Assembly: GCF_037042905.1 (NCBI RefSeq)
Contig: NC_087252.1
Location: 19,344,001 to 19,408,000 of the forward strand
Source: Lytechinus pictus
Lineage: Eukaryota
DNA length: 64,000 nt
Reading direction: 5' to 3'
The notes below the pieces were generated by a model that searched no databases, had not been told where the DNA came from, and was given only the letters and a program-made list of their open reading frames with translations. The translations under genes and the position numbers were made by a program. The first letter of the stretch is position 1. Each line of letters begins with the position of its first letter. Shown in pieces: positions 2,794-60,917 of this stretch.

Positions 2794-4198
2794 GCTAAGC
2801 TTGTAACCGATTTTGCAATCGGCAACCGATTCCGTTCGATTTCACCACAATCGGCGATCACTTGCCGATCTTCGATCATGCCCCTTGAAGGAAAAAATCG
2901 AAAATAAAAAATCGGCGTAGATCTAGTTACAGTGCGTGATCGTTCAGAAGATATTTCAAGATTGTTTTTGAGGTGCTAGCTATTTAGAGGTCGCATTATT
3001 CAGGGAGAAAGACGCGGTATCATCTCTGACGATGTTTAAGAGGATAGATATTTTCTCTTCCAACTCATGGTGATAGCGGATGCCGCCGTGAAATTTTTAA
3101 AGGTCGTATTACTGATGGAGATCACTGCGCTACTCTCTTACATCGTTTATGATGATAGACATCTTCTCTTCAACCTCGTGGTGATAGCGTACCCCGCTGT
3201 AAATTTTTAAAAGTCGTATTATCGACGGAGCTCATTGTGTTACTCTCTTACATCGTTTATGAAGATATACATTCTATTTTCAACCTCGTGGTGATAGCGG
3301 ACCCCGCCGTATACTTTTAAAGATCGTGCTACTGACGGAGCTCATTGCGTTACTCTCTTACATCGTTTATGATGATAATTGATATACATTTTATTTTCAA
3401 CCTCGTGGTGATAGCGGACGCCGCCGTGAACTTTAAAGGTCGTATTACCGATGGGCATCACTGCGCTACTCTCTTACCTCTTTTATGATGATAGACATCT
3501 TCTCTTCAACCTCGTGGTGATAGCGGACCCCGCCGTATACTTTTAAAGATCGTGCTACTGACAGAGCTCATTGCGTTACTCTCTTAGATTGTTTATGATG
3601 ATATACATCTTCTCAACCTCAATTTATTTGTCTTTGCAACTTCGTCGGGAGATGCTTCTTTTATATTTCTTCTTAGATATCAAAAGTTCATTTCTCAAGA
3701 TAGGTGCGTGCTTGCGTCTTCTACTACATTTTAATTGCACTTGCGACTTTAAGATGATGCGTCGTACGAGATCAAGAGATCATTCCAATAATTCTAAATA
3801 GCTAGCACCTAAAAATACTTATAAAAGATGTCCCGCCGATCGTTCATTAACCTGTGATCTTTGAGAAATATTTTCATTTTCTTTTCCTTTGCGCCTTTGC
3901 TCGGAAGATGCGTCTTTCGTTTATCTTTCTAACAAAAATCACTCGGTTTATTTTAAAGCAATAACACCTCAAAACCCCTTTAAAACATGTTCCAAACGAT
4001 CGCGCATTTTGGCGACTTCCATTCCTATGCATTCGTCTTTGTGACTTTGTCAGGAAGATGCGCGAGACCGCAAACAAAATTTTCATGTAGGGGCCTATTC
4101 CTTTGTTTTTAAAACATCGCCGATTCGATTTTGATTTTAGAAGCTTAACTGCCGATCCGATTTTCGATCTGATTTTTGATCCGATTTACAACATTAGT
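2794..4198. mobile_element. Probable non-autonomous DNA element carrying an internal tandem array
   Basis: Imperfect outer inverted ends (CTAA..TTGTAA.CGAT) and a perfect inner 18-bp inverted repeat AGGTGCTAGCTATTTAGA (2971-2988 / 3793-3810). Confidence 0.45.
3000..3620. repeat. Tandem array of about 110-bp units (5-6 copies)
   Basis: CAACCTCGTGGTGATAGCG(G) recurs at about 3061, 3172, 3281, 3398, 3507 and partially at 3613. Confidence 0.9.
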
Positions 4199-20760: not shown

Positions 20761-21027
20761 GTCATCCCTTCCCCCTAGGGAGCGTGCTGTCTAATTGTTG
20801 GCACGCTTTGCGTGCCGTTACCGCCCCTCAAAAATTACGCATACATTCGTAATTCCGAAGCTTCGTTATTCCGAAGGTTCGGATATTCCGAAGGTTCCTT
20901 ATTCCGAAGGTTCGTAATTCCGAAGGTACATTAGTCCGAAAACAAAATGAGGTTCAGTGTAGTAGGTTTCACGGTACACCATGTATTCTTTCTTGGGCAT
21001 ATGTTGGTCCTGAAAAGGACCACCCAA

Positions 21028-21069
21028 TCTCGACGTTTCGACAAGTGTGTTCTTGTCGTCCTCAGGAGA
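21028..21069 (-). ncRNA. Minimal type I hammerhead ribozyme of the Penelope pLTR
   Basis: UCUC-CUGAGGA-C-GACAAG(AACACA)CUUGUC-GAAAC-GUC^-GAGA: intact core, 6-bp stem II, loopless palindromic ACGU stem III. Predicted cleavage after 21032. Confidence 0.85.
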
Positions 21070-21406
21070 ATGAGCAAAGGTTGGTTGGTGTTGGAGTTTA
21101 GTTGGCGCTCTTCAATCTGGTAGATTATCTGCGCCAGGTCGTTTCCATGTTGCTTAATTCCCGCTTCAATGTCCTCGGCCGGCGTTAGACTAGTCTGACC
21201 TGTCATATAGCGAGGTGCAATATAATTAAGATTAGTTACCTCCACCATTAAATTGTGCATTTTTGTACTTCATAGTATGCAAACTTTTATAAGAAGCTAT
21301 GTCGAAACACAATTTTAGTAGTCTATAAGAATTAACATCACTAAATATAATCCTCAGAACAAAAGGAAGCGAGAGGGAGAGATGGAGAGAGATCAGTGGA
21401 ATATTC

Positions 21407-24400
21407 TTATTCGAATCTCTTTGTTTTTTTCACATAATTCAGGATTACTTTATAATCTGCATTTCTTCCCAATAATGTTGCTAGGTCTGATATTGGCGTA
21501 TTTAATTTCAGGCTTCTTTGCATAGTTCTTCTTTCTCTTTCATATTTATTACAATGTAGTAAAAAATGTTCTATTGTCTCAGGAACCTGACAATGTGAAC
21601 ATAGACCATTTTCATGTTGATTACATTTATACTGATAATAATTCAATTTACATTTTCCAAGTCTTAGCCGGTGAATCATAGTCTCTTCAAATCGAATGAG
21701 ACCTTGATAACTAATTGTTTCTGCCACGTTGGGTTGGATGCTAAATAAATGTCTTCCTTTAGATGAGGATGCCCATTGAGCCTGCCAGATTTCTTTATAA
21801 ATCAAAGACATGTGGTTTTTCCATTCCTCTTTGATATATGGAATGTGTAATTCAACTTCTTCTTTTGATGCTCCTTTTTTTGCTAATTGGTCTGCCACTT
21901 CGTTCCCGTGAATACCGCAATGGGATGGTATCCATTCAAAGTTGACATAAATATCTGATGATTGTAAAACTTTGATTTTATATAAGATATCAACAATAAG
22001 ATTGTTTTGAATTCGATTGCTTTCGAGTGCTTGAAGAGCTGACAATGAATCTGTAAAAATTATGATGGACATTCCTTTGTTATCTCCTAGCCAATCAAGT
22101 GCCATTACAATTGCTGTTAATTCGGCTCTCATTATACTTACAGAATTTAATCTATAGTATTTTTTAATGTCCAGTTCTGGTATATAAAAAGCAGAGCCGG
22201 TTCTCTTGTCTTCTTGTTTTGATCCATCAGTGTAGATCTTTAAGTAACCTTTCCATCTTGTATGTGTCCTTTCTAAGACACAGTTTTTCATATCTTGTAC
22301 TAAGTTACGTTGTTTGTTGATAACATTATGGATATAGTAAGATATATTTGGTATTTCATATGACCAAAAAGGTTCTCGTAATATTCTTTGGCTTAGTTGT
22401 TCAATTTGGATTTCTTCATTTGGCTTACATGCTCTAACTACAAAGGGTCCATGACCTACTTTCCAAGTAAATTGATCAATATACCAGGAAGGTTCAATAA
22501 TTTCTAAAGTAGGATGATGAGTATCTCTATTTGTTAAAAGATAAAACATGTATTTATCAACATACAGTTCTCTTCTTAGTTGTAAAGGTCGTTCACCACA
22601 TTCAACCTGCAGTGCTTCAAGGGCAGGGTTATATACTGCACCAGTTATTATTTTCAGTGACTGATATTGGACTGAATCTAATTCTTGTTTTAGTGAAAGG
22701 CTAGCCGAATCGTATAACTCACATCCGTAGTCTAATATGGATCTAATAAGACCTTTGTATATAATATAAAGAATCGTTTTATTATTTCCCCAACTCGTTC
22801 CTGCTATACACCGTAACAAATTGATTCTTTTTGAACATTTGAGTTTTATATAATCTATGTGCTTTTTCCAGGTGAGTTTCACATCAAACCAAATGCCCAG
22901 AAACTTATATTCTTTGTATTGTGGTATAGATTTATCTTTAATCTCAATATTTACCTCTATTTGCTGCCTATTGGTAAAAATCATAACAGCAGACTTTTGA
23001 GGAGATATAATCATACTCCAGGTTGAGCACCATTGTTCAATCTCTTTTAAAGCTTTCTTAATTTTCTTTTGTAGAAAGTCAAGATTTCTGCCTGAACACC
23101 ATATGGCAATATCATCGGCATACATAGAGATTTTTTACAGATTTTTCTTTCAGTTTTAGATCATTCAACATTAAATTGAACAAAATTGGACTAATCACAC
23201 TACCTTGGGGCGTTCCATTTTCCAGAACAAACTGTGAAGATAACTGACCATCAACTTTTACCTTGCAATATCGATCTTGTAAAAATGAATTAATCCACTG
23301 TAACATTTTTCCTTTTATACCAGCTTGATGACATTTAAATACTATTCCCTTTCTCCATAAAAGGTCATATGCTTTTTCAAGGTCAATGAAAATAACTAGA
23401 ACATACTCTTTGTTAGCTAATCCTTTCTGTATATCTGTTTCTAATCTAAGGAGCTGATCTAAAGAACTTCTATTTTTTCTAAATCCAGCCTGTGTTGGTG
23501 TCAGGATACTGCATCGCTCCATGAACCATACGAGTCTATTTTTAACCATTCTTTCCATCAGTTTGGAGAGAGTTGATGTCAAGGAAATGGGTCGATATGA
23601 AGAAGGGTTCGTTGGATCTTTACCTGGTTTAAGTACAGGGATCTGGGTAGAATAATGCCAATCTGTGGGTAGAATTGAGGAATTCCAAATACTGTTTATT
23701 AAAACTAATATGAACTGAAGAGCTATTTTTGGTAGGTGTTGTATCATAATTGACTTGATACCATCTGTACCTGCTGCAGAATTTTTCATATCCTTAACAG
23801 CGCTTGTTAATTCATTATATGTGAATTCATCATTAAGAGGTGTTTCAGAGGAGTAGCTTTCTTCGATCGTATTTCGTATCAAATTTTCAAATGAATTTCT
23901 TCTAATAATCTCGTCATTGTCTAATCGATTGTCGATCGTTTTAAAAGCCTTAGCAATCAATTCTGCCTTTTCTTGAGCATTAGCTATTGGTGTATTGTTT
24001 CCTGTTAATAAATTGGGAAATATATGTTTGGAGACAGAACCATTTCGTAGTCCTTTCACCATATCCCATACTTTGCCTAAGTTGGATGTTCTCCTCAAAG
24101 ACTGACAGTAGTTTAACCAGTATTCCTTTTGTGTTCGTCTCTTTATTTTTTGAGCATATGCTTTCTTTTTCCTGTACATTTCCAAGTCATCCTTTCTAAA
24201 ATGTCTATTTAATCGATTTCTATATTTATTTCTTTCTTTGATTGCTTCTTGGTATTCTAGTGTCCACCAAGGTACTGGGTTTTTTTGCTTTTCGATTTCT
24301 GCCTGCTTTGCGAAGGGTTTCTTCTGCCACTTCGTTAATAATCTGCAAAATCAAATTGTACTTATCTTGAATATTCAGATCATGTGAAAAATGTAATATC

Positions 24401-25134
24401 TTTATTTTACTAAATTTATGCTTCAATCTTTCCCGATATATTTCCCAGTTTACGTGCTTGAAGGACCAATTCTTTTCATGAGGATTGATGTTATCATCTA
24501 CAAATTCTATTTCGTGCAGTGAGCACTTGATAACATTGTGATCGCTCCCGAAATTTCCTAGCACGTTCCATTTTAGTTTGCTGGCGATTTCCTTCGAAGC
24601 AATTGTTAAGTCTAGGCAAGACCTTGTCCCTGTATGGATGTCCATTCTTGTAGGCGTCCCATCGTTCAACACTACTAAATCATGTTTTGTTATAAAGTTT
24701 TCAACTAATGTCCCATTACTATCTCGCTTTATGCTACCCCACAGAGGGTTGTGTGAATTGAAATCACCTGTAATTATTATGTTTTTTGAACAATTTTCAA
24801 TCAAATTTTCTAAATCTCGCAATTCTATCTTTTGACAAGGATTATAATAATTGATTAATGAAATGACCTTGTCATAAGTGAAAATGTCAATTCTTTGATA
24901 TTCCTTGATTTGAGGCAAATTGACTTCTTTGAAAGTAACTGTTTTATGCACATATATTGCAATTCCTCCTCTTCCTCCTTGGCCTCTATTTTTTATTACT
25001 GGGATGAAATCTGGAATTGCTAATATATTAAAATCAGTGAACCATGTTTCTTGTAAACATATCAAGGCAGGGATGGAGTTTAATTCTACATTTTCTATTA
25101 GCTCTTTGTAAAAGTCTGGACCGTGAGCATTCAT
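21407..25134 (-). pseudogene. LINE copy A ORF2 (APE-RT-RNaseH), broken into three ORFs by two +1 homopolymer indels (about 23130 and 24283)
   Basis: ORFs 24226-25134, 23112-24185 and 21407-23125 concatenate to the copy B protein. T6 vs T5 and T7 vs T6 runs; could be assembly errors. Confidence 0.85.
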
Positions 25135-25201
25135 GCTTTGGGCATTCCATTGTAAAATATTTAAAGGCCGAGCGTTAATTGTATTTGAGCTGTCTTTATT
25201 A

Positions 25202-26833
25202 CTAAAGACGATCGTGGATCATCTCTGGAGACACCTCGTTGATGTCTAAGCATCGCTTGGCTGCCTCAACCACTAATCTAATTCTGTTTGAATGAGAAGT
25301 TTCTTTGTCAAGGTTGTTAACTATAAAAGTGATGAATGCCAAAAAGTCGACTCTAGCATTTTCTGTGGATGCGGGAATTACAGGTCCAGACTCTTCTGCT
25401 TCATTAGGCCTACGATTATTCTCTTTACAAGTGAATTCTTGCGCATCTGTCTGTACAGACTTTTCCGCCGTTTCTGTTTGAGTGGATATGGTCGCCGTTT
25501 TTATTGTCGACCTCTTTACCGTTGGTATTTGATCTACTTTAGCTTCCAAAATATTCGGTTGATCTGGGATTTTCTTTCCTTTGGGGGGTTTGATAATATT
25601 CTTGTTTGATGATTCACGATCTTTCGAGTGATTTTCTTCTTTTTTTTCTTGATGGTATATTTTTGTTGCTTGAGCATAAGTTAAATTATTTTGCAGGCTG
25701 ACATTTTGAATATTTTTTGCTTCCTTATAATAGGTACATCCTTGATAGGCCGCTGAATGATTAAGGTTACATCTCAAGCATTTTGGGCTATCTTTATTGG
25801 GGCACATTTCAAAAGTGTGGGTCTCACCACATCTTACACATCTTAAATGACCCTTACAATTCTTTTGGATGTGCCCAAATTGCTGGCATTTATGGCATCT
25901 TGTTACAGTAGGGACAAACTCATCAACTACATATTTTTGGTATAGAAAGGAGACATGGTGTGGAAGATTTGGTCCTTTGAATACTAAAAGAACAGAAGGG
26001 GTTGGTGATAATTCACCGTTTATTCTTTTATTGAATCTCTTTACATACGTCACACCTTGTTCTTTCAAGAGTTCATTGAGTTCTTCCTCCGTGATTAGTG
26101 TATCTACTTTATGAATAACACCACGGATTTGAGTAATGGGTATATATTGTGCAACCTTGACAGGGGTGTGAATTAATTCAGTCATTTCTAAAATCTTTTT
26201 CATCTGTGTTTCATCAATACAAGTAACTTTCAGGCCTCCCTTTTCTTTCATAATTTTACTCACCTCACCATACTTTGAGTTGATTTCTTTAATGAGTTTT
26301 GCTGGGCTTATTTTGCTTATGCTTGAATTCTCGCCTACATCTCTTATTTCTACTATCATAGATTTATTCTCACTTCTGACATGTCTGATATTCTGCTTTT
26401 TACGATTTGAACTCGACCCTTCTTTGTTTTCGAAACTTCCTTTCCTAACTCTCTTGTCGTCTTCATTTATAGTTCTTGTACTTGCTTTTCTCTTTTTTCT
26501 CTCCACTTTTCGCCACTCCATTTCACTCTCAACTTCTGTAGAACTCTCTCTATCATTTGATTTATTGAGATGAGCTTGGAATATACCGTGTTTTCTATTA
26601 CTGCTCGGGGTCATCATTACATTACCAATTGCGGCTTGATAATATGCATCTTCTCCCGAAGAAATATCTGTTTCTTCCGTTTCCATTATCCCTTTTTGGA
26701 TAGTTTGAATATTATTAGAAGTACTGTTAGCATTGGGTTTTGTTAGTATGTTGGTTAGTTTACTGTAAATGTGCTTTTGAATTTCGCTGACAGGCTTACC
26801 AATCCGCTGTCCGAATCGAAAGAGTTGGTTCAT
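25202..26833 (-). CDS. LINE copy A ORF1, gag-like nucleic-acid-binding protein (543 aa)
   Basis: Three CCHC-type knuckles: CHKCQQFGHIQKNC, CVRCGETHTFEMC, CLRCNLNHSAAYQGC. Confidence 0.92.
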   Translation of the reverse strand: MNQLFRFGQRIGKPVSEIQKHIYSKLTNILTKPNANSTSNNIQTIQKGIMETEETDISSGEDAYYQAAIGNVMMTPSSNRKHGIFQAHLNKSNDRESSTEVESEMEWRKVERKKRKASTRTINEDDKRVRKGSFENKEGSSSNRKKQNIRHVRSENKSMIVEIRDVGENSSISKISPAKLIKEINSKYGEVSKIMKEKGGLKVTCIDETQMKKILEMTELIHTPVKVAQYIPITQIRGVIHKVDTLITEEELNELLKEQGVTYVKRFNKRINGELSPTPSVLLVFKGPNLPHHVSFLYQKYVVDEFVPTVTRCHKCQQFGHIQKNCKGHLRCVRCGETHTFEMCPNKDSPKCLRCNLNHSAAYQGCTYYKEAKNIQNVSLQNNLTYAQATKIYHQEKKEENHSKDRESSNKNIIKPPKGKKIPDQPNILEAKVDQIPTVKRSTIKTATISTQTETAEKSVQTDAQEFTCKENNRRPNEAEESGPVIPASTENARVDFLAFITFIVNNLDKETSHSNRIRLVVEAAKRCLDINEVSPEMIHDRL

Positions 26834-26961
26834 AAGCTTCTCAGAGTCTCGTTTTCAAATATAATGACACTTGTTGGATAAAAATCTATAAGACTTTCGC
26901 TTTTGCTGAAAGAGTAGTTCCGAAATCATATAAATCCACAGAAAATAAAGCTCAGATCCAA

Positions 26962-27029
26962 TGATACCTTGGATGTTGTCTCGGAGAACCTTGCGATGAC
27001 GCTTGGCACCACCCTTTCCGAGACCCTTT
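26962..27029 (-). pseudogene. H4: Captured histone H4 coding fragment (K8-I29)
   Basis: Translates [22 protein letters not shown], a 22/22 match to canonical H4. No start codon and no remainder of the gene. Confidence 0.95.
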
Positions 27030-27387
27030 TCTCGTCGCAGAAACGTGGCGCTAAAATCAAGTTGGTTGGTGTTGGAGTTTAGTTGGCGCTCTTCAATCTG
27101 GTAGATTATCTGCGCCAGGTCGTTTCCATGTTGCTTAATTCCCGCTTCAATGTCCTCGGCCGGCGTTAGACTAGTCTGACCTGTCATACAGCGAGGTGCA
27201 ATATAATTAAGATTAGTTACCTCCACCATTAAATTGTGCATTTTTGTACTTCATAGTATGCAAACTTTTATAAGAAGCTATGTCGAAACACAATTTTAGT
27301 AGTCTATAAGAATTAACATCACTAAATATAATCCTCAGAACAAAAGGAAGCGAGAGGGAGAGATGGAGAGAGATCAGTGGAATATTC

Positions 27388-30300
27388 TTATTCGAATCTC
27401 TTTGTTTTTTTCACATAATTCAGGATTACTTTATAATCTGCATTTCTTCCCAATAATGTTGCTAGGTCTGATATTGGCGTATTTAATTTCAGGCTTCTTT
27501 GCATAGTTCTTCTTTCTCTTTCATATTTATTACAATGTAGTAAAAAATGTTCTATTGTCTCAGGAACCTGACAATGTGAACATAGACCATTTTCATGTTG
27601 ATTACATTTATACTGATAATAATTCAATTTACATTTTCCAAGTCTTAGCCGGTGAATCATAGTCTCTTCAAATCGAATGAGACCTTGATAACTAATTGTT
27701 TCTGCCACGTTGGGTTGGATGCTAAATAAATGTCTTCCTTTAGATGAGGATGCCCATTGAGCCTGCCAGATTTCTTTATAAATCAAAGACATGTGGTTTT
27801 TCCATTCCTCTTTGATATATGGAATGTGTAATTCAACTTCTTCTTTTGATGCTCCTTTTTTTGCTAATTGGTCTGCCACTTCGTTCCCGTGAATACCGCA
27901 ATGGGATGGTATCCATTCAAAGTTGACATAAATATCTGATGATTGTAAAACTTTGATTTTATATAAGATATCAACAATAAGATTGTTTTGAATTCGATTG
28001 CTTTCGAGTGCTTGAAGAGCTGACAATGAATCTGTAAAAATTATGATGGACATTCCTTTGTTATCTCCTAGCCAATCAAGTGCCATTACAATTGCTGTTA
28101 ATTCGGCTCTCATTATACTTACAGAATTTAATCTATAGTATTTTTTAATGTCCAGTTCTGGTATATAAAAAGCAGAGCCGGTTCTCTTGTCTTCTTGTTT
28201 TGATCCATCAGTGTAGATCTTTAAGTAACCTTTCCATCTTGTATGTGTCCTTTCTAAGACACAGTTTTTCATATCTTGTACTAAGTTACGTTGTTTGTTG
28301 ATAACATTATGGATATAGTAAGATATATTTGGTATTTCATATGACCAAAAAGGTTCTCGTAATATTCTTTGGCTTAGTTGTTCAATTTGGATTTCTTCAT
28401 TTGGCTTACATGCTCTAACTACAAAGGGTCCATGACCTACTTTCCAAGTAAATTGATCAATATACCAGGAAGGTTCAATAATTTCTAAAGTAGGATGATG
28501 AGTATCTCTATTTGTTAAAAGATAAAACATGTATTTATCAACATACAGTTCTCTTCTTAGTTGTAAAGGTCGTTCACCACATTCAACCTGCAGTGCTTCA
28601 AGGGCAGGGTTATATACTGCACCAGTTATTATTTTCAGTGACTTATATTGGACTGAATCTAATTCTTGTTTTAGTGAAAGGCTAGCCGAATCGTATAACT
28701 CACATCCGTAGTCTAATATGGATCTAATAAGACCTTTGTATATAATATAAAGAATCGTTTTATTATTTCCCCAACTCGTTCCTGCTATACACCGTAACAA
28801 ATTGATTCTTTTTGAACATTTGAGTTTTATATAATCTATGTGCTTTTTCCAGGTGAGTTTCACATCAAACCAAATGCCCAGAAACTTATATTCTTTGTAT
28901 TGTGGTATAGATTTATCTTTAATCTCAATATTTACCTCTATTTGCTGCCTATTGGTAAAAATCATAACAGCAGACTTTTGAGGAGATATAATCATACTCC
29001 AGGTTGAGCACCATTGTTCAATCTCTTTTAAAGCTTTCTTAATTTTCTTTTGTAGAAAGTCAAGATTTCTGCCTGAACACCATATGGCAATATCATCGGC
29101 ATACATAGAGATTTTTACAGATTTTTCTTTCAGTTTTAGATCATTCAACATTAAATTGAACAAAATTGGACTAATCACACTACCTTGGGGCGTTCCATTT
29201 TCCAGAACAAACTGTGAAGATAACTGACCATCAACTTTTACCTTGCAATATCGATCTTGTAAAAATGAATTAATCCACTGTAACATTTTTCCTTTTATAC
29301 CAGCTTGATGACATTTAAATACTATTCCCTTTCTCCATAAAAGGTCATATGCTTTTTCAAGGTCAATGAAAATAACTAGAACATACTCTTTGTTAGCTAA
29401 TCCTTTCTGTATATCTGTTTCTAATCTAAGGAGCTGATCTAAAGAACTTCTATTTTTTCTAAATCCAGCCTGTGTTGGTGTCAGGATACTGCATCGCTCC
29501 ATGAACCATACGAGTCTATTTTTAACCATTCTTTCCATCAGTTTGGAGAGAGTTGATGTCAAGGAAATGGGTCGATATGAAGAAGGGTTCGTTGGATCTT
29601 TACCTGGTTTAAGTACAGGGATCTGGGTAGAATAATGCCAATCTGTGGGTAGAATTGAGGAATTCCAAATACTGTTTATTAAAACTAATATGAACTGAAG
29701 AGCTATTTTTGGTAGGTGTTGTATCATAATTGACTTGATACCATCTGTACCTGCTGCAGAATTTTTCATATCCTTAACAGCGCTTGTTAATTCATTATAT
29801 GTGAATTCATCATTAAGAGGTGTTTCAGAGGAGTAGCTTTCTTCGATCGTATTTCGTATCAAATTTTCAAATGAATTTCTTCTAATAATCTCGTCATTGT
29901 CTAATCGATTGTCGATCGTTTTAAAAGCCTTAGCAATCAATTCTGCCTTTTCTTGAGCATTAGCTATTGGTGTATTGTTTCCTGTTAATAAATTGGGAAA
30001 TATATGTTTGGAGACAGAACCATTTCGTAGTCCTTTCACCATATCCCATACTTTGCCTAAGTTGGATGTTCTCCTCAAAGACTGACAGTAGTTTAACCAG
30101 TATTCCTTTTGTGTTCGTCTCTTTATTTTTTGAGCATATGCTTTCTTTTTCCTGTACATTTCCAAGTCATCCTTTCTAAAATGTCTATTTAATCGATTTC
30201 TATATTTATTTCTTTCTTTGATTGCTTCTTGGTATTCTAGTGTCCACCAAGGTACTGGGTTTTTTGCTTTTCGATTTCTGCCTGCTTTGCGAAGGGTTTC

Positions 30301-31113
30301 TTCTGCCACTTCGTTAATAATCTGCAAAATCAAATTGTACTTATCTTGAATATTCAGATCATGTGAAAAATGTAATATCTTTATTTTACTAAATTTATGC
30401 TTCAATCTTTCCCGATATATTTCCCAGTTTACGTGCTTGAAGGACCAATTCTTTTCATGAGGATTGATGTTATCGTCTACAAATTCTATTTCGTGCAGTG
30501 AGCACTTGATAACATTGTGATCGCTCCCGAAATTTCCTAGCACGTTCCATTTTAGTTTGCTGGCGATTTCCTTCGAAGCAATTGTTAAGTCTAGGCAAGA
30601 CCTTGTCCCTGTATGGATGTCCATTCTTGTAGGCGTCCCATCGTTCAACACTACTAAATCATGTTTTGTTATAAAGTTTTCAACTAATGTCCCATTACTA
30701 TCTCGCTTTATGCTACCCCACAGAGGGTTGTGTGAATTGAAATCACCTGTAATTATTATGTTTTTTGAACAATTTTCAATCAAATTTTCTAAATCTCGCA
30801 ATTCTATCTTTTGACAAGGATTATAATAATTGATTAATGAAATGACCTTGTCATAAGTGAAAATGTCAATTCTTTGATATTCCTTGATTTGAGGCAAATT
30901 GACTTCTTTGAAAGTAACTGTTTTATGCACATATATTGCAATTCCTCCTCTTCCTCCTTGGCCTCTATTTTTTATTACTGGGATGAAATCTGGAATTGCT
31001 AATATATTAAAATCAGTGAACCATGTTTCTTGTAAACATATCAAGGCAGGGATGGAGTTTAATTCTACATTTTCTATTAGCTCTTTGTAAAAGTCTGGAC
31101 CGTGAGCATTCAT
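27388..31113 (-). CDS. LINE copy B ORF2: AP endonuclease - reverse transcriptase - RNase H - C-terminal CCHC (frame open to 31197)
   Basis: LQETW, GDFNSH, SDH (APE); YRPISL, QAGFR, PQGS, YADD (RT); YTDGS, AEL.AI, TDS, WIPSH.GI.GNE.AD (RNase H); CSHC..ETIEHFLLHC. Confidence 0.96.
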   Translation of the reverse strand: MNAHGPDFYKELIENVELNSIPALICLQETWFTDFNILAIPDFIPVIKNRGQGGRGGIAIYVHKTVTFKEVNLPQIKEYQRIDIFTYDKVISLINYYNPCQKIELRDLENLIENCSKNIIITGDFNSHNPLWGSIKRDSNGTLVENFITKHDLVVLNDGTPTRMDIHTGTRSCLDLTIASKEIASKLKWNVLGNFGSDHNVIKCSLHEIEFVDDNINPHEKNWSFKHVNWEIYRERLKHKFSKIKILHFSHDLNIQDKYNLILQIINEVAEETLRKAGRNRKAKNPVPWWTLEYQEAIKERNKYRNRLNRHFRKDDLEMYRKKKAYAQKIKRRTQKEYWLNYCQSLRRTSNLGKVWDMVKGLRNGSVSKHIFPNLLTGNNTPIANAQEKAELIAKAFKTIDNRLDNDEIIRRNSFENLIRNTIEESYSSETPLNDEFTYNELTSAVKDMKNSAAGTDGIKSIMIQHLPKIALQFILVLINSIWNSSILPTDWHYSTQIPVLKPGKDPTNPSSYRPISLTSTLSKLMERMVKNRLVWFMERCSILTPTQAGFRKNRSSLDQLLRLETDIQKGLANKEYVLVIFIDLEKAYDLLWRKGIVFKCHQAGIKGKMLQWINSFLQDRYCKVKVDGQLSSQFVLENGTPQGSVISPILFNLMLNDLKLKEKSVKISMYADDIAIWCSGRNLDFLQKKIKKALKEIEQWCSTWSMIISPQKSAVMIFTNRQQIEVNIEIKDKSIPQYKEYKFLGIWFDVKLTWKKHIDYIKLKCSKRINLLRCIAGTSWGNNKTILYIIYKGLIRSILDYGCELYDSASLSLKQELDSVQYKSLKIITGAVYNPALEALQVECGERPLQLRRELYVDKYMFYLLTNRDTHHPTLEIIEPSWYIDQFTWKVGHGPFVVRACKPNEEIQIEQLSQRILREPFWSYEIPNISYYIHNVINKQRNLVQDMKNCVLERTHTRWKGYLKIYTDGSKQEDKRTGSAFYIPELDIKKYYRLNSVSIMRAELTAIVMALDWLGDNKGMSIIIFTDSLSALQALESNRIQNNLIVDILYKIKVLQSSDIYVNFEWIPSHCGIHGNEVADQLAKKGASKEEVELHIPYIKEEWKNHMSLIYKEIWQAQWASSSKGRHLFSIQPNVAETISYQGLIRFEETMIHRLRLGKCKLNYYQYKCNQHENGLCSHCQVPETIEHFLLHCNKYERERRTMQRSLKLNTPISDLATLLGRNADYKVILNYVKKTKRFE

Positions 31114-31177
31114 GCTTTGGGCATTCCATTGTAAAATATTTAAAGGCCGAGCGTTAATTGTATTTGAGCTGTCTTTA

Positions 31178-32812
31178 TTACTGAAGACGATCGTGGATCA
31201 TCTCTGGAGACACCTCGTTGATGTCTAAGCATCGCTTGGCTGCCTCAACCACTAATCTAATTCTGTTTGAATGAGAAGTTTCTTTGTCAAGGTTGTTAAC
31301 TATAAAAGTGATGAATGCCAAAAAGTCGACTCTAGCATTTTCTGTGGATGCGGGAATTACAGGTCCAGACTCTTCTGCTTCATTAGGCCTATGATTATTC
31401 TCTTTACAAGTGAATTCTTGCGCATCTGTCTGTACAGACTTTTCCGCCGTTTCTGTTTGAGTGGATATGGTCGCCGTTTTTATTGTCGACCTCTTTACCG
31501 TTGGTATTTGATCTACTTTAGCTTCCAAAATATTCGGTTGATCTGGGATTTTCTTTCCTTTGGGGGGTTTGATAATATTCTTGTTTGATGATTCACGATC
31601 TTTCGAGTGATTTTCTTCTCTTTTTTCTTGATGGTATATTTTTGTTGCTTGAGCATAAGTTAAATTATTTTGCAGGCTGACATTTTGAATATTTTTTGCT
31701 TCCTTATAATAGGTACATCCTTGATAGGCCGCTGAATGATTAAGGTTACATCTCAAGCATTTTGGGCTATCTTTATTGGGGCACATTTCAAAAGTGTGGG
31801 CCTCACCACATCTTACACATCTTAAATGACCCTTACAATTCTTCTGGATGTGCCCAAATTGCTGGCATTTATGGCATCTTGTTACAGTAGGGACAAACTC
31901 ATCAACTACATATTTTTGGTATAGAAAGGAGACATGGTGTGGAAGATTTGGTCCTTTGAATACTAAAAGAACAGAAGGGGTTGGTGATAATACACCGTTT
32001 ATTCTTTTATTGAATCTCTTTACATACGTCACACCTTGTTCTTTCAAGAGTTCATTGAGTTCTTCCTCCGTGATTAGTGTATCTACTTTATGAATAACAC
32101 CACGGATTTGAGTAATGGGTATATATTGTGCAACCTTGACAGGGGTGTGAATTAATTCAGTCATTTCTAAAATCTTTTTCATCTGTGTTTCATCAATACA
32201 AGTAACTTTCAGGCCTCCCTTTTCTTTCATAATTTTACTCACCTCACCATACTTTGAGTTGATTTCTTTAATGAGTTTTGCTGGGCTTATTTTGCTTATG
32301 CTTGAATTCTCGCCTACATCTCTTATTTCTACTATCATAGATTTATTCTCACTTCTGACATGTCTGATATTCTGCTTTTTACGATTTGAACTCGACCCTT
32401 CTTTGTTTTCGAAACTTCCTTTCCTAACTCTCTTGTCGTCTTCATTTATAGTTCTTGTACTTGCTTTTCTCTTTTTTCTCTCCACTTTTCGCCACTCCAT
32501 TTCACTCTCAACTTCTGTAGAACTCTCTCTATCATTTGATTTATTGAGATGAGCTTGGAATATACCATGTTTTCTATTACTGCTCGGGGTCATCATTACA
32601 TTACCAATTGCGGCTTGATAATATGCATCTTCTCCCGAAGAAATATCTGTTTCTTCCGTTTCCATTATCCCTTTTTGGATAGTTTGAATATTATTAGAAG
32701 TACTGTTAGCATTGGGTTTTGTTAGTATGTTGGTTAGTTTACTGTAAATGTGCTTTTGAATTTCGCTGACAGGCTTACCAATCCGCTGTCCGAATCGAAA
32801 GAGTTGGTTCAT
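31178..32812 (-). CDS. LINE copy B ORF1, gag-like protein (544 aa)
   Basis: Three zinc knuckles, as in copy A. Confidence 0.93.
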   Translation of the reverse strand: MNQLFRFGQRIGKPVSEIQKHIYSKLTNILTKPNANSTSNNIQTIQKGIMETEETDISSGEDAYYQAAIGNVMMTPSSNRKHGIFQAHLNKSNDRESSTEVESEMEWRKVERKKRKASTRTINEDDKRVRKGSFENKEGSSSNRKKQNIRHVRSENKSMIVEIRDVGENSSISKISPAKLIKEINSKYGEVSKIMKEKGGLKVTCIDETQMKKILEMTELIHTPVKVAQYIPITQIRGVIHKVDTLITEEELNELLKEQGVTYVKRFNKRINGVLSPTPSVLLVFKGPNLPHHVSFLYQKYVVDEFVPTVTRCHKCQQFGHIQKNCKGHLRCVRCGEAHTFEMCPNKDSPKCLRCNLNHSAAYQGCTYYKEAKNIQNVSLQNNLTYAQATKIYHQEKREENHSKDRESSNKNIIKPPKGKKIPDQPNILEAKVDQIPTVKRSTIKTATISTQTETAEKSVQTDAQEFTCKENNHRPNEAEESGPVIPASTENARVDFLAFITFIVNNLDKETSHSNRIRLVVEAAKRCLDINEVSPEMIHDRLQ

Positions 32813-33012
32813 AAGCTTCTCAGAGTCTCGTTTTCAAATATAATGACACTTGTTGGATAAAAATCTATAAGACTTTCGCTTTTGCTGAAAGAGTAGTTCC
32901 GAAATCATATAAATCCACAGAAAATAAAGCTCAGATCAGTGCAGATCAGTGCAGCTCAGTCACCGGATCGGAGAGCTCGCTACTCTTCTGGCTAGCTCTG
33001 ATCTATATCTGT

Positions 33013-33046
33013 ACTGAGTCAAGTTTGTAAAAGCAGGCCTTATATA
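33013..33046 (-). promoter_or_regulatory. Putative TATA box (TATATAA 33046-33040) and Inr (TCAGT, A at 33015) at the Penelope/LINE junction
   Basis: Canonical -31 spacing between TATA and the Inr adenine. Confidence 0.55.
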
Positions 33047-33288
33047 CTCTGTCGAAGTGCCGTATGCAGGGTATCTCGCAGGGTACATGTCTCTGATTGG
33101 CTAGATAGGTCACATGACATCCACATATGCGGACGTGGGTGACAACACACAAATTGGGCGCGCAAAACCAGCGACGACCGGAAATTGCTGTCAGTTATCA
33201 TTCCCGCTAGGATTAGCATGAATGACAAAAGTCACCACTTCCGCCCATACACTGCAGTGCTCACACGTGTGTGGAACGTCCGGGTAGG

Positions 33289-34666
33289 CTAATTAGGCAA
33301 ATTAGCCTCTTTGTCTAGAACGGTAAGCCAGATATTGCTGAGTTGGAGGCCGCTGTCTTGAGGAACAGTGTTATGTTCCTCAATCTCCAACGCTTCTCTG
33401 ACTCTCCGTTGATACGAGTAAGGGACACGGGTGACCAGTCTACTCTCATCCCAAAGAATCCGGTGATCATGCGTATGGGCATGATCGATGATTGCAGATT
33501 TTTCCCTCTCGTCTCTCCTACCATGGGCCTTGTGTTCCTTAATCCGAGTGTTGAAGGAACGACCCGTCTCTCCGATGTAAACCTTACCGCATTCACAAGG
33601 AATTCGGTAAACTCCAGGGAGGTACGTCCTTGGAGTTGCGCTTGTCCTTATGTGTAGTGAGGGCAGATTGAAGCTTATTTGAGGAACTATGACGAACCTC
33701 AATGTCGGCTTCTCTCAAAATCCTCTGAATTTTGTGAGAGGCTGCTCCCAGATATGGAAGAACGACTCTCGCCTTGGGTTGTCCTGCACGAGGGTTCCGC
33801 GAGGGGGGAAGCTCAGTGCAGATCTTATGTGAGGGGTAGTTGTTACATTTCAAAACACGTTTGATATGCTCAAGCTCACCTCTCAGGTGGATCTGGTCAC
33901 TAACCTCATGCGCTCGTTTGACTAACGTCTTGTTGATGGATCTTAGCACTGATGGGTGGTGGAATGAACGATAGTTCAAGTACCGATCAGTGTGAGTAGG
34001 TTTCCGATAAACCTGATGGGATAGGGATCCCTGTGCCGTCCTCGTAATCTTTGTATCAAGAAAGGGGATAGATCCCTCATTCTCCATTTCCATGGTGAAC
34101 TTGATACACTCGTGTTGAGAGTTGAGGTGCTGTAGGAAATTGCTAGTTTCCTCAGCACCGTGTTGCCAAACCACAAAAGTGTCGTCCACATATCTAAGCC
34201 ACACTTTGGGTTTGTGGGTTGCTGACTGGAGAGCCGTCTCCTCGAAATGTTCCATGAACATGTTGGCTACCACTGGGGACAGGGGAGACCCCATGGCACC
34301 CCCTTCCGTTTGCCTGTAGAATGTGTCTCTCCATCTGAAAGAGGTGGAATTGAGGCACATCTCAAGCAGGTCATGGATCTCTAGAGGAGACAACTGTGTC
34401 CTGTCAGGGAGAGTTCTGTCAAATTTCAATCTCTCAAGGATGATGGCGCAAGCATCCTTAACTGGTACACTTGTGAACAATGACTCAACATCAAAGCTGA
34501 TGAGGAGGTCATTGTTAGAGACGTTCATCTGACAGATATGCTCAACGAAATGTTTAGAGTTTCTCACGTGATGCACGCCCTGACCAACAAGAGGCTGTAA
34601 GATGTAAGTCAAATGCTGAGCCAGTGCGTACGTGGGAGATCCTCTAGTAGACACAATAGGTCTGAG
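33289..34666 (-). pseudogene. Penelope-like ORF: RT (33593-34654 frame) + GIY-YIG endonuclease (33289-33702 frame), one frameshift near 33620, N-terminally truncated
   Basis: LRPIVS, SFDVESLFTSVP, GAMGSPLSP, WLRYVDD, IPFLD, VYRKPTHT; GVYRIPCECGKVYIGETGR..R.KEH..REALEI. Confidence 0.93.
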
Positions 34667-35637
34667 TGAGGTTCGTAATAAATTCCGAAGGTTCGTTAGT
34701 CCGAAAACGAAATGATTAACGAACCTTATTTCGTTTTCGGACTAACGAACCTTCGGAACAACGAACCTTATTTCGTTTTCGGATTAACGAACCTTCGGAA
34801 AAACGAACCTCATTTCGTTTTCGGATTAACGAACCTTCGGAATAACGCCACAAATGTTCGGATTAACGAACCCTTTTACGTTTTCGGATTAACGAACATC
34901 GAGGTATATAGGCAATTTACGTGTTTCGGAATTACGAACCTTCGGAATAAAGAACCTTCGGAATTACGAACCTTCGGAATTACGAAGTGTAACCAAAAAT
35001 TATATCCTGGCCATGCACGCGGTTGTCTTTTCTGCATGCAGTTTCTAGAGACCTGTATACATGGTATACTTAGTGCGTCTAAATTAGACCAAAGAGCTAT
35101 TAGCTCTCTGATTAGACCCTGGTGAACTGCTATATTATATTGACCCTAGGGTCCACGGTACAGTTAGTGGACGTACACTGATCTTGAACATAAATTATAC
35201 AAACAGGATGAGCCTGTCGCCGTTTAATGGCGAACTCGGTGTTGCCTAGGTAGCTTTCTTCAGATCTTCTTTATTCTGTTTTTGTTGGGGTACGTAGGAA
35301 CTGGAGTATATGTAGGCCCTGATTACCAATGACATATGAAATATTTTGCGACTATATTAAATGGCTGGCTGTTTAACGACATAAATTACTCGGACTCTTG
35401 GCAGGAGATCCCCGAAGGAAATTGCGAGGTCAAAGATCGTTTTCACTATTAAATTCTTGTATATACCACCGCAGCAGGTAAGCCTATTATAATAATTCAT
35501 TATGCCTGGTTATAAGAGCCTCCACAGTTCAAGATGATTAATTTCAGGACATTTGCACCAGCGACGTTGTATACATGTGAATTCCACACACTGGGCCTAT
35601 TAGTATTGGAATAGTGAGTTTTATTTTTTAATCTAAC

Positions 35638-60760: not shown

Positions 60761-60917
60761 NNNNNNNNNNNNNNNNNNNNNNNNNNNNNNNNNNNNNNNN
60801 NNNNNNNNNNNNNNNNNNNNNNNNNNNNNNNNNNNNNNNNNNNNNNNNNNNNNNNNNNNNNNNNNNNNNNNNNNNNNNNNNNNNNNNNNNNNNNNNNNNN
60901 NNNNNNNNNNNNNNNNN
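60761..60917. other. Assembly gap
   Basis: Run of N. Confidence 1.

Follow-up and report, generated by a model that had tools for sequence, protein, structure and literature searches.

A fragment of histone H4 coding sequence lies between two almost identical copies of a LINE in the genome of Lytechinus pictus. This arrangement raises the question of whether the fragment is a bridge, laid down while a single event copied one LINE RNA after another, or whether it belongs to one of the two copies and came to lie between them in another way. All coordinates in this report are positions in the window, i.e. the complete stretch of 64,000 nt of NC_087252.1 (GCF_037042905.1) that was analyzed.

Anatomy of the LINE dimer

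The LINE copies A and B are located head to tail on the minus strand (Table 1). Aligned over 5879 nt, the copies show 10 substitutions and two one-base indels, which corresponds to 99.8% identity. The linker between the tail of B and the 5' region of A comprises 102 nt (27060–26959). In element orientation it consists of 31 nt, followed by 68 nt of H4 sequence and TTG. Sequence comparison confirmed the initial annotation in that the copies are joined by 68 nt of exact H4 sequence and 3 nt, and in that the window contains no other H4 sequence. The first half of the complete block reads CTT, GAC, C13 piece, AAG, C12 piece, GTG, LINE B with its tail. The second half reads CTT, GAT, C9 piece, H4 piece, TTG, LINE A with its tail, CTT and the remainder of the target. 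Captured pieces other than H4 are named here after the sources given in Table 1.

Table 1. Features of the LINE dimer and its host element, listed in element orientation (positions in the window).
Feature	Position	Strand	Remarks
Host element, upstream part	33021–34668	-	RT frame remnant, CCAAT box, TATA box (33046–33040); ends in CTT (33023–33021)
GAC, extra bases between target CTT and C13 piece	33018–33020	-	found neither in intact copies of the target nor in the C13 source
Captured C13 piece	32988–33017	-	source G000:C13 ~25056389–25056422, plus strand
AAG, extra bases between C13 and C12 pieces	32985–32987	-	
Captured C12 piece	32964–32984	-	source G000:C12 ~12381091–12381111, plus strand
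GTG, extra bases between C12 piece and LINE B	32961–32963	-	
LINE copy B	27061–32960	-	full length; variable 10-nt repeat array at the 5' end; tail ends in CAAC repeats
Copy B ORF1	31178–32812	-	intact, 544 aa
Copy B ORF2	27388–31113	-	intact, 1241 aa; endonuclease, RT, RNase H
GAT, extra bases between CTT and C9 piece	27056–27058	-	
Captured C9 piece	27029–27055	-	27 nt exact, sense; source L065:319–293, G000:C9, minus strand
Captured H4 piece	26962–27029	-	68 nt sense; codons K8 to I29 and first base of T30
TTG, extra bases between H4 piece and copy A	26959–26961	-	
LINE copy A	21080–26958	-	starts ~22 nt inside the variable 5' repeat array
Host element, downstream part	20956–21079	-	CTT (21079–21077), then hammerhead-like motif, histone-type stem-loop, purine box

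ORF2 matches the Pfam models Exo_endo_phos_2, RVT_1 and RNase_H, all beyond their cut-offs. With endonuclease and RT in ORF2, the element is an endonuclease-type non-LTR retrotransposon. In copy B, the ATG of ORF2 (31113) precedes the match to the Pfam endonuclease model by 22 codons. In copy A, ORF1 encodes 543 aa, whereas single-A insertions in two A runs break ORF2 into three pieces. Eight truncated young copies of the family have duplications of 3–8 bp and CAAC-repeat tails, and a filler of 4–20 nt is found at the junction of truncated copies. Among 30 sampled 3' ends the tails have 0–2 extra CAAC units.

The homology shared by the full-length copies (C29/C28, C13, C56 and B) starts at position 32960. 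Thus, copy A is short of ~22 nt of LINE sequence and not of 79 nt of 5' UTR, as had been annotated. Only these ~22 nt of variable repeat array are missing; the remainder of the apparent difference is sequence captured by copy B. The 57–60 nt upstream of 32960 in copy B are absent from all other copies, and 33017–32961 is captured foreign sequence that forms a second mosaic. Bases were compared copy by copy using flank-anchored look-ups, which replaced a MAFFT alignment with one misplaced row. The rare G at 27189 of copy B recurs in a single further copy (L036), a hint that A and B stem from different source RNAs. Private changes are slightly more numerous in copy A.

Two further loci of the family are described here for completeness. 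L050 (G000:C29:144111) and L051 (C28:632040) contain one LINE copy with identical flanks on both sides and are probably two haplotypes or a duplicated part of the assembly. The full-length copy on C56 is interrupted near LINE position 3645 by ~9–10 kb of unrelated sequence, presumably a nested element (L033:6770 to L066:352, then L037). Its ends are 15.7 kb apart and it was considered as a second multimer; it is a single LINE with a nested insertion. The 5' junction of this copy has a 38-nt filler with no other match in the genome. A genome-wide gapped pattern search (tail, 0–400 nt, 5' region) for other dimers of the LINE family returned the present locus as the only dimer with a linker of up to 400 nt.

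The linker is spanned by no public read or contig, as would be the case for an assembly artefact in which the tandem or the linker is absent from the animal. Words specific for the junction occur in no public run, which is neutral for the junction. Four aligned runs contain H4 mRNA reads and LINE contigs only; none contains the joint, and the depth on 27032–27058 is zero in the contig runs. The assembly has no alternative haplotype of the dimer locus. An artefact is nevertheless extremely improbable. The nearest run of N is located at 60761 and the sequence is free of gaps for 27 kb around the junction. Furthermore, an assembler cannot create a unique linker from exact pieces of two other loci, and the linker fits precise LINE ends and a coherent target duplication. 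Judged from the sequence, the dimer structure is real.

Origin of the captured pieces

In all 68 positions the H4 piece agrees with the H4 gene that is part of a 7.45-kb tandem histone repeat (coding sequence, L002:1505–1572). Such a match is far beyond chance and the core observation is therefore correct. A genome search with the 68-mer yielded at least 99 other exact copies and 362 sites with up to 3 mismatches. The 31 nt preceding the H4 piece had been annotated as being of unknown origin. Of these, 27 match a site on C9 exactly (chance expectation ~1e-7). Searched at full length with up to 3 mismatches, the 31-mer found only itself; a 25-nt core of this stretch then led to the C9 source, which is a single-copy site at the same tolerance. 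It occupies the stretch 71–97 nt ahead of the ATG of a first exon, which has 41 codons and a GTGAGT donor at its end. An Atlas search with the 41 residues gave no name for the gene. The C9 and H4 pieces overlap by one A (27029).

Two pieces are also found upstream of copy B. The C13 piece matches its source over 27 nt exactly, or over 30 nt with a slip in a 4-nt GTAC repeat. The source is the start of a putative non-coding first exon. It is preceded by CCAAT and GC boxes, the match begins with a TCAGT initiator-like motif, and a GAG/GTAAGT donor follows after ~215 nt. The C12 piece matches over 21 nt exactly, or over ~24 nt with a slip in a TAG repeat, and its source is followed on the same strand, after ~230 nt, by an ATG open frame. 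Both source loci (L071:491–499 and L072:488–497) contain one more GTAC or TAG unit, respectively, than the captured copy. Either allelic variation or slippage during reverse transcription may account for this. A match of the copy B leader to H4 (12 of 13 positions) was rejected as chance. Short local alignments of the fillers with the LINE, the histone repeat and the Penelope-like unit described below gave matches at chance level only.

All four sourced pieces (H4, C9, C12 and C13) are in sense orientation and collinear with the LINE. Each is sense to the H4 gene or to an exon or open frame just downstream. The copied length is 21–68 nt per piece, and the joins have 0–3 extra bases (GAC, AAG, GTG, GAT, TTG) or an overlap of 1 nt. 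None of the four crosses an intron, with the transcript starts of C9, C12 and C13 predicted from sequence only. No break point coincides with a splice donor, and the assembly contains no donor LINE beside the H4, C9, C12 or C13 source sites. Both observations support template switching of the RT onto cellular mRNAs. A donor LINE within an H4 gene was not found either; the H4 repeats are devoid of the LINE. The initial proposal that the RT had switched onto cellular RNAs is thus supported and can be extended to four mRNAs, each captured in sense orientation from within an exon or just upstream of one.

The captured pieces were probably templated by RNA rather than by DNA. At several joins a G is positioned directly 5' of the copied sequence, as would be expected if a capped RNA were copied to its end. 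Filler DNA at repair junctions is well known, and the mosaics could in principle have been made at the DNA level, with stray DNA or cDNA captured at the 5' junction during double-strand-break repair. The shortness of the pieces, the form of the joins and the 4–20 nt fillers of truncated family copies are in line with this. However, every one of the four runs in the direction of the LINE and is sense. Random DNA filler would show this orientation in four of four cases only 1 time in 16 and would rarely derive from such sites. The pieces come from exons, or from just upstream of them, in genes that are spread over four contigs, and three of them map upstream of a coding start or to a putative first-exon start, which is where an enzyme reaching the end of an RNA is expected to stop. 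An origin of the mosaics at the DNA level is therefore very unlikely.

Chimeric RNAs might also have existed beforehand, through RNA ligation, trans-splicing or 5' transduction from donor copies, and might then have been copied through. Such routes have been discussed for L1 chimeras (bioRxiv 10.1101/2025.02.02.635956). Contigs of two other runs join the leader of B to the LINE 5' region; RNA or DNA of the B type with its leader therefore exists outside the present assembly. On the other hand, the assembly has no donor at the source sites, which are H4 repeats free of the LINE or else single hits, the break points are not splice donors, and the 2–3 extra bases at the joins fit untemplated addition. 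Only a slim chance is given to pre-existing chimeras, and template switching during reverse transcription is the preferred origin of the pieces.

The expression of H4 was inspected in two RNA runs (tissue unspecified). H4 reads cover 26962–27033 and then continue as H4 mRNA. They are of two types, which are distinguished by two synonymous differences (26984 and 27020) and by a different 5' leader. The captured type amounts to 25–37% of the H4 reads in these runs; the non-captured type is more abundant in both. With such a share the captured type is no sharp stage marker. The idea that the H4 subtype time-stamps the transposition is accordingly weak, as the type concerned is that of the high-copy tandem repeat and is represented at this level in both runs.

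Insertion site and number of insertions

The LINE block interrupts another mobile element. The upstream part of this host element has 98.5% identity to a 2826-bp tandem unit, which occurs in head-to-tail arrays and also as an inverted pair whose arms measure 1717 nt. An RT open frame is present in the unit (Pfam RVT_1, E = 1.3e-11). A GIY-YIG-like motif is visible in its translation, and the Pfam GIY-YIG model is not matched even at E = 10. On account of the RT and the GIY-YIG-like motif, the host unit is classed as Penelope-like. The hammerhead-like motif downstream of the block is visible as CTGAGGA, a hairpin and GAAAC, with no Rfam hammerhead match at E = 1 or better.

In the terminal repeat of the host, a histone-type stem-loop (21021–21006) is followed by a purine-rich CAAGAAAGA box (20995–20987). 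The same features are present in intact copies, e.g. at L032:1480–1520. The stem-loop and CAAGAAAGA would correspond to the layout of the histone mRNA 3'-end signal. The only Rfam match in the terminal repeat is Histone3 (16.9 bits, E = 0.083), which is below the cut-off. A retroelement with histone-type 3' processing would be unusual, and a literature search retrieved no report of one.

The empty site is defined by at least 18 intact copies of the host element that read straight through. Compared to the empty site, the LINE block replaces nothing and duplicates CTT (3 bp) at both outer edges. Its distance is 25 bp from the TATA box on the upstream side and 14 bp from the hammerhead-like motif on the downstream side. 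With at most 1 mismatch, 87 empty sites are found in the genome. At least four loci are occupied, namely the present one (C8), C6:24307497, C6:24369813 and C56:152484, and the nick is always just before CTT. Three of 30 sampled 3' flanks of the LINE family are at this site (L037, L044 and L055), and L035 is the junction of copy B itself. L039 is situated in a different Penelope-like family, immediately before its hammerhead-like motif. The remaining flanks are diverse, unrelated sites. Strict site specificity of the R2 or Tx1L type was rejected, since most of the 30 flanks are elsewhere. The site is a recurrently used hot spot, i.e. a preference rather than a specific target.

The CTT of the target occurs three times, at 33023–33021, 27061–27059 and 21079–21077, which results in the layout CTT-B-CTT-A-CTT. 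The C of the internal CTT is the last base of the tail of B. Together with 27058–27057 it reads CTTGA, and since the same sequence is found upstream of B, CTTGA brackets this copy. The earlier statement that neither copy is bracketed internally by a target duplication does not hold. Dimers that arise by double insertion have the layout T-TE-T-TE-T, and distinct 5' ends of their non-LTR elements are taken as evidence of two events (McGurk and Barbash 2018, PMC5932611). The present dimer has the layout expected of two insertions at one site, and its 5' ends differ: A starts ~22 nt inside the array and carries H4 and C9, B is full length and carries C12 and C13. Both units have the same construction of CTT, GA and a pyrimidine, a piece from upstream of a coding start, a second piece, three extra bases and the LINE. 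L070 is an old, truncated, independent insertion at the hot spot with the same CTT duplication and no filler. Its tail-to-target junction has the same form as that of copy B, whose 3' junction is as expected of priming at the usual nick.

The best explanation, which we hold with moderate confidence, is that two separate insertions took place at the hot spot and that each was ended by template switches of the RT onto cellular mRNAs. On the narrower issue of number, we infer that two insertions rather than one event are likely. Two target-primed insertions of one young LINE family would have occurred in the start-site region of the host, 25 bp past its TATA box. In each, the RT would have reached, or almost reached, the 5' end of the LINE RNA, added 2–3 untemplated bases and switched onto cellular mRNAs, copying 21–68 nt of each. 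The cDNA would then have been joined to the upstream target end that finishes in CTT. The event of copy A would have included the H4 piece and then the piece of the C9 gene leader, that of copy B the C12 piece and then the C13 first-exon piece. If there were two insertions, the H4 piece is therefore filler that belongs to the 5' junction of copy A. Its bridge-like appearance is due only to the second insertion, which came to lie against this filler. Insertion of A before B is slightly favored, because no coincidence is required if B followed with a CTTGA duplication, and because private changes are slightly more numerous in A. With ~5 events on ~91 sites the chance of a double hit is roughly 10%, so that a double insertion is not far-fetched.

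Two points speak against two events. The internal duplication has only 3 bp (5 bp with GA) and an adenine-rich untemplated addition could give TT in the sense strand. Furthermore, the junction of A already has two switches, and a third one onto LINE RNA is not far-fetched. In that case, one target-primed event would have produced the 12-kb block from six templates: LINE RNA, H4 and C9 mRNAs, a second LINE RNA, and C12 and C13 mRNAs. In agreement with this, a single CTT duplication in a known target encloses the block as a whole, template switching is demonstrable in the LINE family, A and B are 99.8% identical, and the TT following the tail of B could be untemplated. However, the internal CTT (or CTTGA) repeats the target and the 3' junction of B equals that of the independent copy L070. 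A single event needs 5.9 kb of synthesis after a switch, whereas all other switches were followed by 68 nt or less. The enzyme would also have had to enter precisely where the LINE tail ends, yet no defined RNA 3' end exists there. The genome contains no other dimer. Additionally, the RNA copied first (A) has two ORF2 frameshifts, which is a poor fit with an enzyme copying its own mRNA unless these are later mutations. A single event is thus unlikely and survives only because the internal duplication of 3–5 bp could be mimicked by adenine-rich untemplated addition. The initial annotation had proposed one event that copied a LINE, H4, an unknown RNA and a second LINE. This is not the best reading of the locus in view of the T-TE-T-TE-T layout, the hot spot with its fixed nick, the L070 junction, the separate mosaic of each copy and the lack of another dimer.

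Relation to known systems and significance

In the preferred reading, the locus adds a further case to two known phenomena, namely template-switch chimeras and double-insertion dimers. The dimer resembles the tandem dimers formed by double insertion at one site (PMC5932611), such as the R1 tandems of Drosophila rDNA, in the copy of the target in the joint, the differing 5' ends and the strong site preference. It differs from them in the duplication of only 3–5 bp, in the 99 nt of captured mRNA sequence that the joint contains in addition, and in the hot spot, which is the start-site region of another retroelement instead of rDNA or the promoter of a host gene.

Template switching of LINE RTs onto cellular RNAs is a known process (PMC2104539; bioRxiv 10.1101/2025.02.02.635956). 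As in U6/L1 and other bipartite mammalian chimeras and in the tripartite chimeras of Magnaporthe grisea (PMC2104539), transcripts are fused in one orientation 5' of the LINE 3' part. Direct joins or few extra bases, more than one jump per event and a flanking target duplication are further properties in common with chimeric retrocopies (PMC2104539). The bounds of such a retrocopy are present as CTT on either side of unit A and of unit B and as a CAAC-repeat tail; the duplication is short. In contrast to the chimeric retrocopies (PMC2104539), the pieces are very short (21–68 nt), and three of the four are from upstream of a coding start or from a putative first-exon start and one is from H4. 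They are attached to nearly full-length LINEs and not to short 3' ends. The LINE involved encodes endonuclease, RT and RNase H, has a CAAC-repeat tail and resides in an invertebrate genome.

Few untemplated bases per join are also typical of the end-to-end jumping of R2 and group II intron RTs in vitro, and the G 5' of the copied sequence at several joins would fit a capped end. Unlike in these reactions, the H4 piece is internal at both of its ends, and the join of H4 and C9 is a 1-nt overlap rather than an addition of bases. A more far-reaching reading, which is distinctly unlikely, regards the C9, C12 and C13 pieces (21–30 nt) as extending from the capped start to ~+21 to +30. They would be copies of very short capped nuclear RNAs from promoter-proximal pausing, entered at their 3' ends by end-to-end jumping during integration at an active promoter, and the whole block could, in the same vein, be a single concatemer of six templates. 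If this were true, LINE 5' junctions would be a natural record of short nascent germ-line RNAs.

Tx1L of Xenopus is a target-specific LINE that inserts within another mobile element, Tx1D. In both systems, insertions recur at exactly the same position of a different mobile element. In the present family this is a preference only, and most copies are located at unrelated sites.

Considered as two insertions, the locus is a clean, fully sourced natural case of multiple switches by an invertebrate LINE enzyme, with four mRNAs captured over two insertions. It also calls for caution, as a dimer with foreign RNA sequence in its joint resembles a single concatemer and is better explained by double insertion. 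The distinction between one event and two matters wherever the processivity of the enzyme or the birth of tandem repeats is inferred from such structures.

In addition, the start-site region of a Penelope-like element has repeatedly served the LINE family as an insertion site. In one of the contigs that join the leader of B to the LINE 5' region, 79 unaligned letters (the first 30 shown; run type, DNA or RNA, unrecorded) would end ~31 nt past the first base of the TATA box. This extent would be a weak hint of transcription from the host-element promoter. A LINE that is placed downstream of the TATA box of another mobile element might use the promoter of its host.
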